A stretch of 64,000 nucleotides of DNA, from the sequence record NC_061442.1; one strand, 5' to 3'. A program made the position numbers and the translations under genes. Below are positions 49,116 through 55,870 of the stretch, one piece after another; position 1 is the stretch's first letter, and each line of letters begins with the position of its first letter. Below the pieces are notes generated by a model. The model was given only the letters and a program-made list of their open reading frames with translations, did no database searches and was not told the origin of the DNA.

Positions 49116-49184
49116 CTATTCTCCTGAAAACGAAATTCTTATTGCTCTGAATTATGTTTACAGATTACTGGAGTAGTCATAAAA

Positions 49185-49545
49185 GAATAAAGTAAGACAA
49201 ATCTTAAACTCCAATAGGGACTCGTTAGAAATCCTATTGGAGTTCACCCTCAGTGCGATGACGGTCGCCCGAAGGTGTTCTCCCCGTGTCTTTCAAATGC
49301 ACCGACACGGTAGCGCTTGCGGTCTTACGCTCTTGTGTGTGCAGCGCGTCGGCAGCAGGTAGCATTTACGCGCAGCAAAGAGCAGCCGCTTTCGGCCATT
49401 AGCGATAACGCGGTGTTACGCTTAACGGCCTATGTGACTCTGGCCGAGTCTGTACAAAAAAGAGTTCGGCCTATCCCCAATTCGGCAAAAAGAACAGGCC
49501 GAACTAAACATTCAACACACACTCCATGTGCGCTGTTTTGTACTG
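49185..49545 (-). ncRNA. Candidate novel highly structured non-coding RNA (about 360 nt)
   Basis: No credible ORF; about 10 stems, several closed only through minus-strand G-U pairs; 7-bp long-range pairing 49192-98/49322-28; CTAATTT promoter motif at 49550-56. Ends approximate. Confidence 0.7.
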
Positions 49546-49549
49546 TTAC

Positions 49550-49556
49550 AAATTAG
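49550..49556 (-). promoter_or_regulatory. Late-type promoter motif CTAATTT upstream of candidate ncRNA
   Basis: 28 nt past the HAD gene stop, with no ORF following. Confidence 0.55.
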
Positions 49557-49583
49557 AAACATGTTGAAATAATCAGACAATTC

Positions 49584-52613: not shown

Positions 52614-52826
52614 TCATTTCTCAGGAGTAGGGGTAAAGGGGCTGTGAACAAACGGGTTTGTCTTATTGACATACAGGAACCCGAATGCGTTTTGTTTGTA
52701 ACTCTGACGCGCGGCCGATTGCTTTTGTTTAGCTTCGGCGTGTTGTGCGTCCTGCTCGTCAAAGATACCTCGACGATGGAACTTAAAATCAGGGTGTACT
52801 GAAATATCTTTGACGATAGCAGTCAT
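52614..52826 (-). CDS. Small hypothetical protein
   Basis: 70 aa, ATGA-coupled to the TnpB-like gene stop. Confidence 0.5.
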   Translation of the reverse strand: MTAIVKDISVHPDFKFHRRGIFDEQDAQHAEAKQKQSAARQSYKQNAFGFLYVNKTNPFVHSPFTPTPEK

Positions 52827-53854
52827 TTTTTATATTGTCCTGTAACTGTATATACCAGGGTTTTCTTGGAGACGCGAGCATTGACTATCAGATACTTAAA
52901 CTCTTTCGTCAAGTCAAGCTCACCAGACGTAACGCCAATGATCGGAATGTTCTTGATCTCACCAAACGTGAGTGTCGTTCCCATGTCATTAATGGAATAC
53001 GAAGACGAAAGTGAAACACTGTTCAGTGACTTCTTGGAAATCATTGAAGGGTGTTTACCGTGTTGGCGTTTTGCATCCAACCACTTCTGCCAATCACTCA
53101 TTGCGTGGTGCATCGAACGTTTGATCAGCGAACGAGGAATATCTCCTTCGTACTGCTTGCGAAACTCCGTGATGACTTTCGAGTCAGGTGCACCTGCAGT
53201 AACGCGACGTTTGTCCTTAAGCGCTTTCTTCAAATGCTCTGACCAATAGTTGTATGCTTCGACACGGATTTTTAAATAGTCTTCCATGTCGGCTGCCTGT
53301 GCTAGGCTACATTCAATTTCAAATGTCACCAACTTACCCCGATAGCTTGGCGTGTCGGCGGCGTGTCGCTCTGCTTGTTTTGCAGCGCGTGTTTCGGCAA
53401 TCAATTTCTCCTTCAGGCACGCCGCCCATGAGTAAGCAAACGTCAAACGCAAATCAGCACCGTGCGTCATCAGGTCAGGACAGAATTGAAGAATCAACGG
53501 AATTGCGTAACCTAGATTACACTTGCGTTCGATAAACGCAGACTTGAGATCGTCTGGGCTGAGTTTACCCGCGCCTAAATCTGCGAACAATTTACGCGTC
53601 TGTTTGAACGATTCGGAAATGTGCGAGCTATCATAGATAACATCATCCATTGATATGCCAGACTCTACAACTTTGGCATATGCTTCTTCAATCGTAACAT
53701 CAGGCCACGTCCTGTACCCAACGTCCGCCAGCAAAAGATTTCGATGACAGTAAAGCTCATACATGTGCAAAAAGTCTGCGACAGGCAGACTCTCTGGGTA
53801 TACGAATTGTTGGGATACTTTCTTTGGCGTGATACTAGCTTTCTTCTTAATCAT
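52823..53854 (-). CDS. TnpB-derived protein: unknown N-terminal domain + TnpB-like WED/REC lobe, no RuvC
   Basis: Residues about 174-343 align by eye with the IS200/IS605 TnpB N-terminal half ([50 protein letters not shown]); the ORF stops just before RuvC-I. Confidence 0.6.
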   Translation of the reverse strand: [343 protein letters not shown]

Positions 53855-53861
53855 CGCGTTC

Positions 53862-55541
53862 TCACTGGAGTTTGCTGGCTATTTTCAGATACTCACTATT
53901 TACAGTTTCTACATCAGTGAAACCCTTCTTAGCGGTCACATCGCGCCTCAATCCCCCCATACGCAAACCATTCTCCCAGAGTCGCATGAACAACAAGCTA
54001 TTAAGAGTAGGTTGCATGAAGGGTTTTTCTTTCAACGCAACGTCACCTGTATACTCCGTCAAGAGTATCGCACCATCAAACTCGGCACTGCACCATTCAG
54101 CCTCCGCCAAGATTTTTAACAGGTTATGATTTTCCATGCCCTGTATCAAATGACTAAGCACTGTATATTGATCCCGCTTAAAGCGGTGTGCAGGGACCTG
54201 ATGTGAGCAGCCAGAATCATTCTTAAAATAGTAGGCACCGTTGCGGGAGTATGATGCGTCCCTAATTCGTTCGCAAAGTTCACTAACGACCTCAGACGCA
54301 GGCTTGAACATAGCCTTCCACTTATCCCAGATAAAGCCAACATGCTGGTGCATTTCTTTCTCGGTCATCCGAAGTTTCTTAACCGCATTGACCACTTTCG
54401 TGTCATTCAACAATTGTCGATAGATATCTGTCGCCATCGGCTTTTGTTGTTCGTTGTCCGTACGATTTTCGAAAGACTGTTTAAAATATTTCTGATTACT
54501 CCACCCGCTGTATATCCCCCCGTAGTTAAGGGTCTTCGCTGTACTTCGCGTTATCTTCAACTGACGTGCGACTTTATCATGATTGAGATTCTCCAGCTCA
54601 GGACAATCCAAACCGTGCGTTGCCATAAGGTCCAATAGCAGAACCATTTGGGCATTAGGCATATCGAAGTTACGTCCATACGAATGATCGAAACATAGCA
54701 GCTTTACCAGCTTAGGTAAAGCTGCGGTTGTGCCGAACAAACGCGAGCCGACGTGGTTCATCGTATACTCGTCGTAAAACTCAACCAGTCTATCATTAGG
54801 ATTATCGTTAACCAAACGGAACCCGAAACGACAAATCTTTTTCAAGAATGAGTTAAGACGTAGGTGCAGTTTCTTCCGTCGATTAGTCTTGGTGTTGTGC
54901 ATGATATCCAAGAATCGATCGAGGTAGAAACGATACGGACGTTGATTAGCCTGCGCCTTGTTTATCAAGTCGATAACCTCACCGCAATATGCCCTACGAT
55001 TCTCGAAGTTATGAGGACGTATGAACGAGCGGGATTTTATCTCAGAGCAGAACGAAGACTCGACCAAATCTTCCTCGTTCTTATACAACGCTCGCCTGCG
55101 AGCAGGCTTCATGAGATTATACATAGGTTCATCGAGCGTTATCAGCTCACAGAAAATGTCCGTGAACGTTTTGTTGAGCGTATATTTTCTGGCGATTCCT
55201 TTTATGTAGTCGTAACGAGTATGATCGACCTTTCGGCTCAACCATGAAGCCACGGAGTATTCTTTGTGGTACACCATGGCATATCGCATCTTTTCGTGCT
55301 GACGCATGTAGGTGTGAGTCACTACCGTCTCGTTATAAACGTTTCGGCGCTCCATGACATTGGATTTATCGAGAAGGTGCATGAAAAACCACGCCAAACT
55401 CTCGTAAAACTTATCAGATTTTGCTTTAGGTGGCTTTGGGCAAGAATAGATCGTATCCCAGAAGAACTTATGGGCCGATTTCTGCACCGTGAACGCCCAT
55501 CCAGGCATCACGGCCTTCTTGCGGTACACAGGCTTTGCCAT
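53862..55541 (-). CDS. Minimal family-A-fold nucleotide polymerase (TV-Pol-like), no exonuclease domain
   Basis: Likely start ATG 55541 (SD GAGG). GSRLF, motif A FDMPNAQMVLL, motif B RSTAKTLNYGGIY, motif C EFDGAIL in correct order. Confidence 0.65.
   Translation of the reverse strand: MAKPVYRKKAVMPGWAFTVQKSAHKFFWDTIYSCPKPPKAKSDKFYESLAWFFMHLLDKSNVMERRNVYNETVVTHTYMRQHEKMRYAMVYHKEYSVASWLSRKVDHTRYDYIKGIARKYTLNKTFTDIFCELITLDEPMYNLMKPARRRALYKNEEDLVESSFCSEIKSRSFIRPHNFENRRAYCGEVIDLINKAQANQRPYRFYLDRFLDIMHNTKTNRRKKLHLRLNSFLKKICRFGFRLVNDNPNDRLVEFYDEYTMNHVGSRLFGTTAALPKLVKLLCFDHSYGRNFDMPNAQMVLLLDLMATHGLDCPELENLNHDKVARQLKITRSTAKTLNYGGIYSGWSNQKYFKQSFENRTDNEQQKPMATDIYRQLLNDTKVVNAVKKLRMTEKEMHQHVGFIWDKWKAMFKPASEVVSELCERIRDASYSRNGAYYFKNDSGCSHQVPAHRFKRDQYTVLSHLIQGMENHNLLKILAEAEWCSAEFDGAILLTEYTGDVALKEKPFMQPTLNSLLFMRLWENGLRMGGLRRDVTAKKGFTDVETVNSEYLKIASKLQ
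53897..53905 (-). promoter_or_regulatory. Phage promoter motif CTGTAAATA
   Basis: Inside the upstream gene end, 43 nt upstream of the TnpB-like start. Confidence 0.65.
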
Positions 55542-55870
55542 TTGGACCTCAAAACATACGTTTCGTGGCTGATCTTTACAGAATCCGCTCTTTTCTCGTG
55601 GTACGGAACTCAAATTGCATCATCAGATGGGTAGATAGGATATATCAGCATGTTCATGCAGCATGAGCGCACTATAGTCACAAGAAATCAGTAGCCCGAT
55701 TCCGAATCCCTGCTCCCAGGAGACATATCCCTAAAGTATAACCAGCTAAAAACAGCAAAAAAGCTAAACCGTCTTTAGACTGGTTATTTGGTGTCAATGC
55801 AGAGGATTCTGAATCCTCGTGAGAAGACACGCATACAGGGTGCACCAGGAGCGAATCTGTCGGAAGTCGG
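55542..55870. promoter_or_regulatory. Long intergenic control region / candidate origin
   Basis: Two GATTCNGAATC palindromes (55698, 55805), three phased AGC(T/A)AAA tracts (55744, 55754, 55762), promoter variant CTGTAAAGA at 55573-81. Confidence 0.4.

Follow-up and report, generated by a model that had tools for sequence, protein, structure and literature searches.

The gp214 locus of Erwinia phage pEa_SNUABM_35

The 64,000-nt stretch analyzed here (the window) matched the genome of Erwinia phage pEa_SNUABM_35 (NC_061442, Alexandravirus, 261.7 kb) with 100% identity; window positions are NC_061442 record positions minus 124000. pEa_SNUABM_35 is a jumbo phage of the PaBG group, whose members encode a canonical Pol I-type replicase, beta and gamma subunits of Pol III and their own sigma-70-like factor (PMC7412058). 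The gene of interest, gp214, had been picked out in a sequence-only reading as a domesticated derivative of TnpB that lacks the RuvC and zinc-finger half and is fused to a new N-terminal domain. The gene, its two parts and its immediate neighbors are listed below.

52823..53854, minus strand: gp214 (MPK65_gp214), ATG start, 343 aa, annotated hypothetical; stop codon at 52823-52825
53345..53854, minus strand: N-terminal domain of gp214, residues 1-170, all-helical, isoelectric point (pI) 6.5
52826..53344, minus strand: C-terminal half of gp214, residues 171-343, a TnpB-like WED-REC module, basic (pI 9.6), ending before RuvC-I
53862..55541, minus strand: gp215, 559 aa, family-A (Pol I / T7-like) polymerase-like, annotated hypothetical; 7-nt gap to gp214
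52614..52826, minus strand: gp213, a small conserved open reading frame (ORF) of 70 aa with an ATGA overlap with gp214

Full-length homologues of gp214 were found in 22 phage records (26-100% identity) from five genera, namely Alexandra-, Sasquatch-, Rivs-, Yoloswag- and Salmondvirus. The position of the locus is fixed syntenically in all five, with a polymerase-like gene on one side and a peptidase gene on the other, and the wider gene order (Holliday-junction resolvase, two ORFs, polymerase-like gene, gp214, small ORFs, peptidase, clamp loader) is kept from Erwinia to Dickeya phages. Many close relatives of pEa_SNUABM_35 do not carry gp214. When the family profile was compared with 1.84 billion cluster representatives, only seven clusters were recovered, all from one phage lineage, and the family is therefore very narrow. 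Further members came from six loci in IMG/VR and two in a metagenome scan, every one of a known type; RuvC-retaining intermediates were looked for in both collections, and only the known types came up.

Relation of gp214 to TnpB

The structure of gp214 was modeled with AlphaFold2, using no templates and an alignment of 12 homologues, and the model had a mean predicted local distance difference test score (pLDDT) of 83.8, with most blocks of the C-terminal half at 85-94. Residues 25-163 were wholly helical. The N-terminal domain had no match outside its own family in PHROG, NCBIfam, PDB or BFVD, in keeping with the description of some 170 residues without known relatives. Residues 175-341 formed one strand, three (REC) helices and six (WED) strands, which is the WED-REC topology; the insertion of a helical bundle after the first strand of the barrel is an unusual arrangement common to the model and to the WED-REC part of TnpB.

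A Foldseek search of the PDB returned 13 top matches that all belonged to the TnpB superfamily (ISDra2 TnpB, ISFba1 TnpB, Cas12f, Cas12n, Fanzor2), so that the structural check proposed with the sequence-only reading came out in its favor. The best match was ISDra2 TnpB (8exa_A, E 2.8e-4, probability 1.0, 178 columns). The aligned length of ~178 columns is the size of the C-terminal half, and the N-terminal domain was unmatched. The template modeling score was 0.66 when normalized on 8ex9_A, a state of ISDra2 TnpB with RuvC unresolved (166 residues, WED/REC only). In the viral library BFVD, the matches that followed gp214's own family were mostly 'transposases' of the TnpB/Fanzor kind, from phages and giant viruses. 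Match probabilities were 0.9-1.0 for the top 13 in the PDB and for most of those in BFVD. ISDra2 TnpB was compared through PDB structures only (8exa/8ex9/8bf8), and sequence comparisons used E. coli IS609 InsQ.

A bridge at the sequence level was found in P0017 (533 aa, from a metagenomic phage contig), the most distant member of the family (family-profile E 3.7e-6 among the 1.84 billion representatives), which had no match in the phage collection. Since a gp215 homologue lies upstream of it (E 3e-9) and a homologue of the peptidase gp211 directly downstream (42% identity), P0017 is a positional orthologue of gp214. Its residues 384-533 match positions 9-171 of the 403 positions in phrog_506 (E 1.1e-7) and also positions 3-66 of NF040570, the NCBIfam model for the 'RNA-guided endonuclease TnpB family' (E 2.7e-4, 20.3 bits). 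The identity of phrog_506 as the TnpB family follows from InsQ, which matches it end to end (E 2.5e-136). P0017 terminates at the end of WED, before any RuvC, at the same boundary as gp214.

Profile-profile alignment with hhalign used a nine-member TnpB alignment consisting of InsQ and 8 diverse phage TnpBs. The gp214 family scored 27.2 without P0017 and 33.1 with it, as compared to 14.5 ± 2.2 (maximum 20.6) for 60 column-shuffled templates and 13-18 for unrelated alignment pairs; hhalign with InsQ alone in place of the alignment was uninformative. Residues 171-343 of gp214 were placed colinearly onto InsQ 2-167. The strand and first-helix block ending in AYN pairs with InsQ 6-33, the PRSLI...WQKWL...HP block with InsQ 76-101, and the LTFGEIKNI block with the 'LPKLGW' strand of TnpB. 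Family-conserved Q186, N202 and P269 align with the TnpB-invariant Q17, N33 and P101. The colinear register of the sequence-only reading was thus reproduced, in addition to the fold match to solved ISDra2 TnpB. Residue 343 of gp214 aligns with InsQ 167, and gp214 thus stops 16 residues short of the RuvC-I aspartate (D183 of InsQ), just before RuvC-I as had been claimed.

No counterpart of RuvC, with its D-E-D triad, was found in gp214, and the downstream ORFs had no similarity to TnpB. The zinc-finger/TNB (CxxC...CxxC) region also had no counterpart in gp214 in the hhalign alignment; in TnpB the zinc finger is C-terminal to RuvC-II, and C334, C337, C353 and C356 are invariant in the TnpB alignment. 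With the RuvC half wholly lost, gp214 cannot cut DNA. Neither gp214 nor five relatives matched NF040570 (cut-off 100 bits), and P0017 with 20.3 bits was also below the cut-off. Among the neighbors of gp214 there was no tnpA, no insertion sequence (IS) end and no transposase match, and these neighbors are conserved syntenic phage genes, which agrees with the absence of tnpA and IS ends noted before.

The ATGA coupling of gp214 to gp213 is present in the sequence, as reported earlier. The first ~25 residues of gp213 are conserved across genera (start MTAIVK) and are followed by a variable, low-complexity tail, and translation of gp213 is coupled to that of the accessory gene in front of it, whatever the type of that gene. 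Its start loosely resembles a GxDxG strand, and gp213 was considered as a vestige of RuvC-I. This was rejected because hhalign against TnpB gave a score of 10 (E 0.71), two genera have His in place of the Asp at position 7, and a 96%-identical gp213 is present in Alexandra, which is without gp214.

The ratio of nonsynonymous to synonymous substitution rates (dN/dS) between gp214 and its SNUABM_16 homologue was 0.067 overall, 0.073 in the N-terminal domain and 0.061 in the TnpB-like half; these values are approximate because dS was ~1.3, near saturation. A ratio of ~0.07 indicates purifying selection. Since gp214 is an intact gene with both halves under purifying selection, and since it is conserved in 22 records from five genera, the earlier view of domestication rather than decay stands, and exaptation is the appropriate term. 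We conclude that the front, WED-REC half of a TnpB-like protein was exapted long ago to give gp214 and has since been passed on vertically; the assignment of residues 171-343 to a TnpB-type WED-REC half is regarded as highly probable.

The polymerase-like neighbor and noncoding elements

The upstream neighbor gp215 and its inheritance together with gp214 had not been part of the sequence-only reading. All 14 matches of the gp215 family profile were to DNA polymerase gamma, the best with E 0.0025, and fell in the region of motif B (O-helix). The AlphaFold2 model of gp215 (pLDDT 79.9, predicted template modeling score 0.76) had KlenTaq, Klenow, T7 DNA polymerase, Pol theta, T7 RNA polymerase and POLRMT as its top Foldseek matches, with a probability of ~1.0 over ~315 columns. 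Residues D293, K336 and D489 are invariant and correspond by eye to motifs A, B and C, with both catalytic Asp residues retained. From the Pol gamma match, the fold and the invariant motif residues, gp215 is considered family-A polymerase-like and extra to the replicase. Because the steric-gate residue is, by eye, a Gln (Q298) and not the usual Glu, sugar selectivity is unreadable from the sequence. The SNUABM_5 homologue of gp215 is annotated as 'putative helicase'.

Only 7 nt lie between the gp215 stop and the gp214 ATG, and across loci the polymerase-like and gp214 genes are close or overlapping. Type-A gp215 (at least 39% identity) occurs only in Erwinia-phage records that carry gp214, and the two sets coincide. 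The gp214 homologue of the Dickeya JA phages is paired with a polymerase-like gene ~23% identical to gp215. Phages without gp214 have both genes replaced by another pair of polymerase-like and small-protein genes: in type B, represented by Alexandra, a polymerase-like gene ~21% identical to gp215 is followed by an unrelated 165-aa ORF, and in type C a third polymerase-like gene is followed by a 174-aa ORF. In Alexandra-like relatives the DNA is ~89% identical as far as base 1 of gp213. This distribution of cassette types indicates that the polymerase-like gene and the accessory gene downstream of it are inherited and exchanged together.

Comparison of the cassette (window 52827-55541) with Alexandra (locus L006) and loci L026-L031 gave at least three types, with polymerase-like proteins ~21% identical between types. 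Exchange of the types has taken place between phages with 80-90% DNA identity in the flanks, and the breakpoint lies exactly at the start codon of gp213. The 164-174-aa proteins of types B and C were considered as split halves of gp214, and this was dropped because the TnpB-like half was unsupported; the N-terminal domain of gp214 gave a marginal result against Alexandra gp221, the 165-aa type-B accessory protein (hhalign 21-23, equaled by 2/60 shuffles). The polymerase-like genes of Dickeya phage JA11 (L004, 3575-4792) and of AD1 (L029, 2874-3926) are annotated with 405 and 350 aa, respectively, as compared to ~540 aa in orthologues, and each has a long unannotated gap upstream. They may be genes with mis-called starts or disrupted genes.

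Three further features of the window bear on the expression of gp214 or on a possible RNA partner.

53897..53905, minus strand: promoter-like motif CTGTAAATA, 44 nt upstream of the gp214 ATG, within the 3' end of gp215
55542..55870, minus strand: intergenic leader of the gp215-gp214 operon, with motif CTGTAAAGA at 55573-55581 and two conserved blocks
49116-49583, minus strand: unannotated intergenic element of 468 nt between gp208 and gp207

A sigma-70 scan upstream of gp214 found no promoter, which was held at first to refute the claim that gp214 has its own phage promoter; this was reversed after the analysis of CTGTAAATA. The motif has 15 copies in the window, 11 of which lie 27-44 nt upstream of an ATG on the same strand that opens an ORF of at least 65 aa (binomial P ~9e-6). 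It is kept 42-51 nt upstream of the start of the gp214 homologue in 8 loci across genera, and in the Dickeya phages its TAA is the stop codon of the polymerase-like gene. The claim therefore holds at the level of a conserved motif, with the empty sigma-70 scan and the gap of only 7 nt standing against it. Sites of the form CTGTAAA(T/G/C)A in the window include 58663(+), 63026(-), 55581(-), 53905(-), 49163(-), 48817(-), 45948(-), 33649(-), 26287(-), 17338(-) and 13906(-). They are a candidate class of phage promoters, possibly read by the phage's own sigma-70-like factor.

The leader at 55542-55870 had a fold z-score of -3.9. Its blocks at 55656-55679 and 55781-55798 are each unique within the window, and a 21-nt core of the former and a 13-nt core of the latter recur exactly in SNUABM_16 and SNUABM_7. 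SNUABM_7 keeps these cores even with a polymerase-like protein that is only 70% identical. Neither block was found in type-B or type-C phages. The leader is a putative regulatory element or small RNA.

Three Alexandravirus species share the element at 49116-49583 with 94% conservation. Its fold z-score is -5.8, and a comparison of four sequences showed compensatory changes at 11 base pairs; no Rfam match was found in the 47-57 kb interval of the window, which includes it. It likely comprises one or more phage small RNAs and a terminator. The sequence-only reading had suggested that gp214 is possibly an RNA-guided or RNA-binding regulator that uses a noncoding RNA at 49.2-49.5 kb, and had named co-occurrence of the two as a check. 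The element was present in 46 phage records as compared to 22 for gp214, and more than 20 records, including Alexandra (91% identity), have the RNA without gp214; in pEa_SNUABM_35 it sits 3.3 kb downstream of gp214, with five genes between. Because co-occurrence fails, a link of this RNA to gp214 was rejected. The 3' flank of gp214, where the omega-RNA of TnpB and the guides of TldRs are located, is tightly packed coding sequence (gp213 and gp212), and nothing resembling a guide RNA was found directly 3' of gp214, where there is no noncoding space.

Proposed role of gp214 and alternative explanations

In TnpB and in Cas12, which descends from TnpB, WED and REC bind the duplex of the transposon-adjacent motif (TAM) and one side of the guide-target heteroduplex. 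RuvC of TnpB gives catalysis and much of the contact with the omega-RNA scaffold. A protein reduced to WED-REC would thus not cut and would be poorly equipped to hold an omega-RNA, and the clamping of a duplex would still be possible. We propose that gp214 may be a non-catalytic nucleic-acid-binding subunit that works with gp215. Its helical N-terminal domain would dock onto the polymerase-like protein, and its basic WED-REC module would hold duplex DNA or an RNA:DNA hybrid, so that gp214 would serve as a specificity or processivity factor. A role as polymerase subunit is thought the most likely one because gp214 is co-inherited with gp215; as a claim in its own right, the binding partnership is put forward tentatively and at less than even odds. 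T7 gp5 with thioredoxin and Pol gamma B offer a functional analogy for such a small non-catalytic partner of a family-A polymerase, with no homology implied. Taken as a whole, an exapted WED-REC half with gp215 as its partner is our best explanation, to which we give a probability of roughly 0.6.

Several observations weigh against this explanation. The Erwinia-phage proteins themselves are not linked to TnpB by any sequence method at conventional significance: gp214 had no relevant match in PHROGs, NCBIfam (several TnpB models included) or PDB sequences, the family profiles with or without P0017 gave the same result, and the hhalign probability between the gp214 family and TnpB was only 4-16%. 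The link to TnpB rests on the fold, one bridging sequence (P0017) and profile-profile scores. The Foldseek E-values are modest (best 2.8e-4) and come from a model built on a 12-sequence alignment, and the structural alignments of the C-terminal half share 8-15% sequence identity. Nucleic-acid binding by gp214 is putative, being suggested by fold and charge only. Contact between gp214 and gp215 is something that we infer, and gp215 is itself only polymerase-like, with a putative product and activity. gp214 is less conserved than gp215 (84% versus 94% identity to SNUABM_16), and its own promoter motif means that it may also act independently of gp215.

Independent action is the core of one alternative, in which gp214 is a stand-alone, protein-only DNA-binding factor whose WED-REC cleft reads a fixed motif in phage or host DNA. 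Expressed from its own promoter, it might for example regulate transcription or a replication origin. The conserved CTGTAAATA, the basic C-terminal half and the formation of the TAM-duplex site by WED and REC in TnpB are consistent with this. It was judged unlikely in view of the strict co-inheritance and cassette exchange of gp214 with the polymerase-like gene, the gap of 7 nt or overlap between them, and the fact that no target motif was identified. A polymerase-recruitment system made from a TnpB half, in which WED-REC, perhaps together with a small RNA, recognizes an RNA:DNA hybrid or a specific DNA motif and delivers or anchors gp215, the whole being swapped as a cassette, is a distinctly unlikely variant. 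An RNA-guided or RNA-binding regulator of the TldR kind, with a phage noncoding RNA as its guide, has a precedent in the TnpB/TldR family (10.1101/2023.11.30.569447). The element at 49116-49583 is genuinely conserved and structured, and a second conserved noncoding stretch precedes gp215. This reading is nevertheless scarcely probable, given an element that occurs in more than 20 records without gp214 and lies five genes and 3.3 kb away, coding DNA directly 3' of gp214, the lack of an Rfam match, and the loss of RuvC, which in TnpB holds much of the omega-RNA scaffold.

Two further explanations would remove the exaptation itself. The C-terminal half could be an unrelated nucleic-acid-binding domain, a beta-barrel with a helical bundle, whose likeness to TnpB is coincidental, and the missing direct profile match of the Erwinia-phage proteins to TnpB, the structural identity of 8-15% and the low hhalign probability are all in line with such convergence. 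It is very unlikely, as the top 13 PDB matches and most BFVD matches fall in one superfamily with probabilities of 0.9-1.0, the unusual topology is common to both proteins, P0017 is significant in two independent TnpB profile libraries, and TnpB-invariant residues are part of the aligned register. Genomes commonly contain truncated tnpB fragments, and with gp214 missing from many close relatives it might be asked whether the gene is a decaying IS200/IS605 tnpB remnant, a pseudogene fragment that is in frame with an upstream ORF by chance. The probability of this is close to negligible: gp214 is full length and fixed in position in five genera, its TnpB-like half has a dN/dS of 0.06, the distant P0017 has the same end-point, no tnpA, IS ends or RuvC remnant is present, and phages that lack gp214 have an alternative cassette in its place, not a deletion.

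As an exapted TnpB half, gp214 was compared with known systems. It resembles TnpB (ISDra2; E. coli IS609 InsQ) in that residues 171-343 have the same WED-REC order as TnpB residues ~2-167, with the Q, N and P positions aligned. It differs in having no RuvC, zinc-finger/TNB or C-terminal domain, no tnpA, no IS ends and no detectable omega-RNA, and in having an extra N-terminal domain of 170 residues, a fixed, non-mobile position in a phage operon and scores below every TnpB family cut-off. With TldRs, including the prophage fliC-associated ones, gp214 shares the state of an immobilized, nuclease-dead, phage-borne TnpB derivative under selection. TldRs keep the overall TnpB fold, the RNA interface and an adjacent guide, whereas gp214 is without the whole RuvC half, has no adjacent guide that could be found, has a new N-terminal domain and is partnered with a polymerase-like gene and not with a regulated target gene. 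In many TldRs, C-terminal truncations are reported to remove parts of RuvC and the zinc finger, while the remaining fold is kept, as is the interface that binds RNA (10.1101/2023.11.30.569447). The earlier statement that TldRs keep a dead RuvC is therefore partly correct, and the distance between gp214 and TldRs is one of degree, plus the N-terminal fusion. gp214 is homologous to the front half of TnpB and is outside both TnpB and TldR by RuvC, zinc finger, IS context and cut-offs.

A census of TnpB/Cas12 exaptations describes forms with inactivated or rearranged RuvC that are associated with, among others, sigma factors, SpoIIE, flagellin and DppD; every one of these forms keeps the scaffold (PMC10691335). 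Cas12k of type V-K CRISPR-associated transposons, Cas12m and the sigma-associated dCas12f/TnpB proteins (PMC10691335; PMC12259090) are comparable to gp214 in that the scaffold is reused to provide a transposase or an RNA polymerase with a targeting or binding module; unlike gp214, they retain the inactive RuvC scaffold and a guide RNA. The RuvC scaffold and a guide RNA are common to all TnpB/Cas12 exaptations described to date, among them the Cas12 effectors, Cas12k, Cas12m, TldR and sigma-associated dCas12f. In the literature, of which our coverage is incomplete, we found no report of a TnpB derivative that consists of WED-REC only, nor of a derivative whose partner is a family-A polymerase.

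If the explanation preferred here is true, a WED-REC-only derivative under selection means that the DNA/RNA-gripping half of TnpB can serve as an independent module in a lineage of lytic jumbo phages, and its pairing with the family-A polymerase-like gp215 points to a use beyond cutting or repressing. Were the recruitment variant true, a TnpB-derived polymerase-recruitment system would be exchanged between phages. The swapped-cassette locus may reflect an arms race. In the Erwinia and Dickeya biocontrol phages, two genes annotated as hypothetical thereby receive their first lead to a function.

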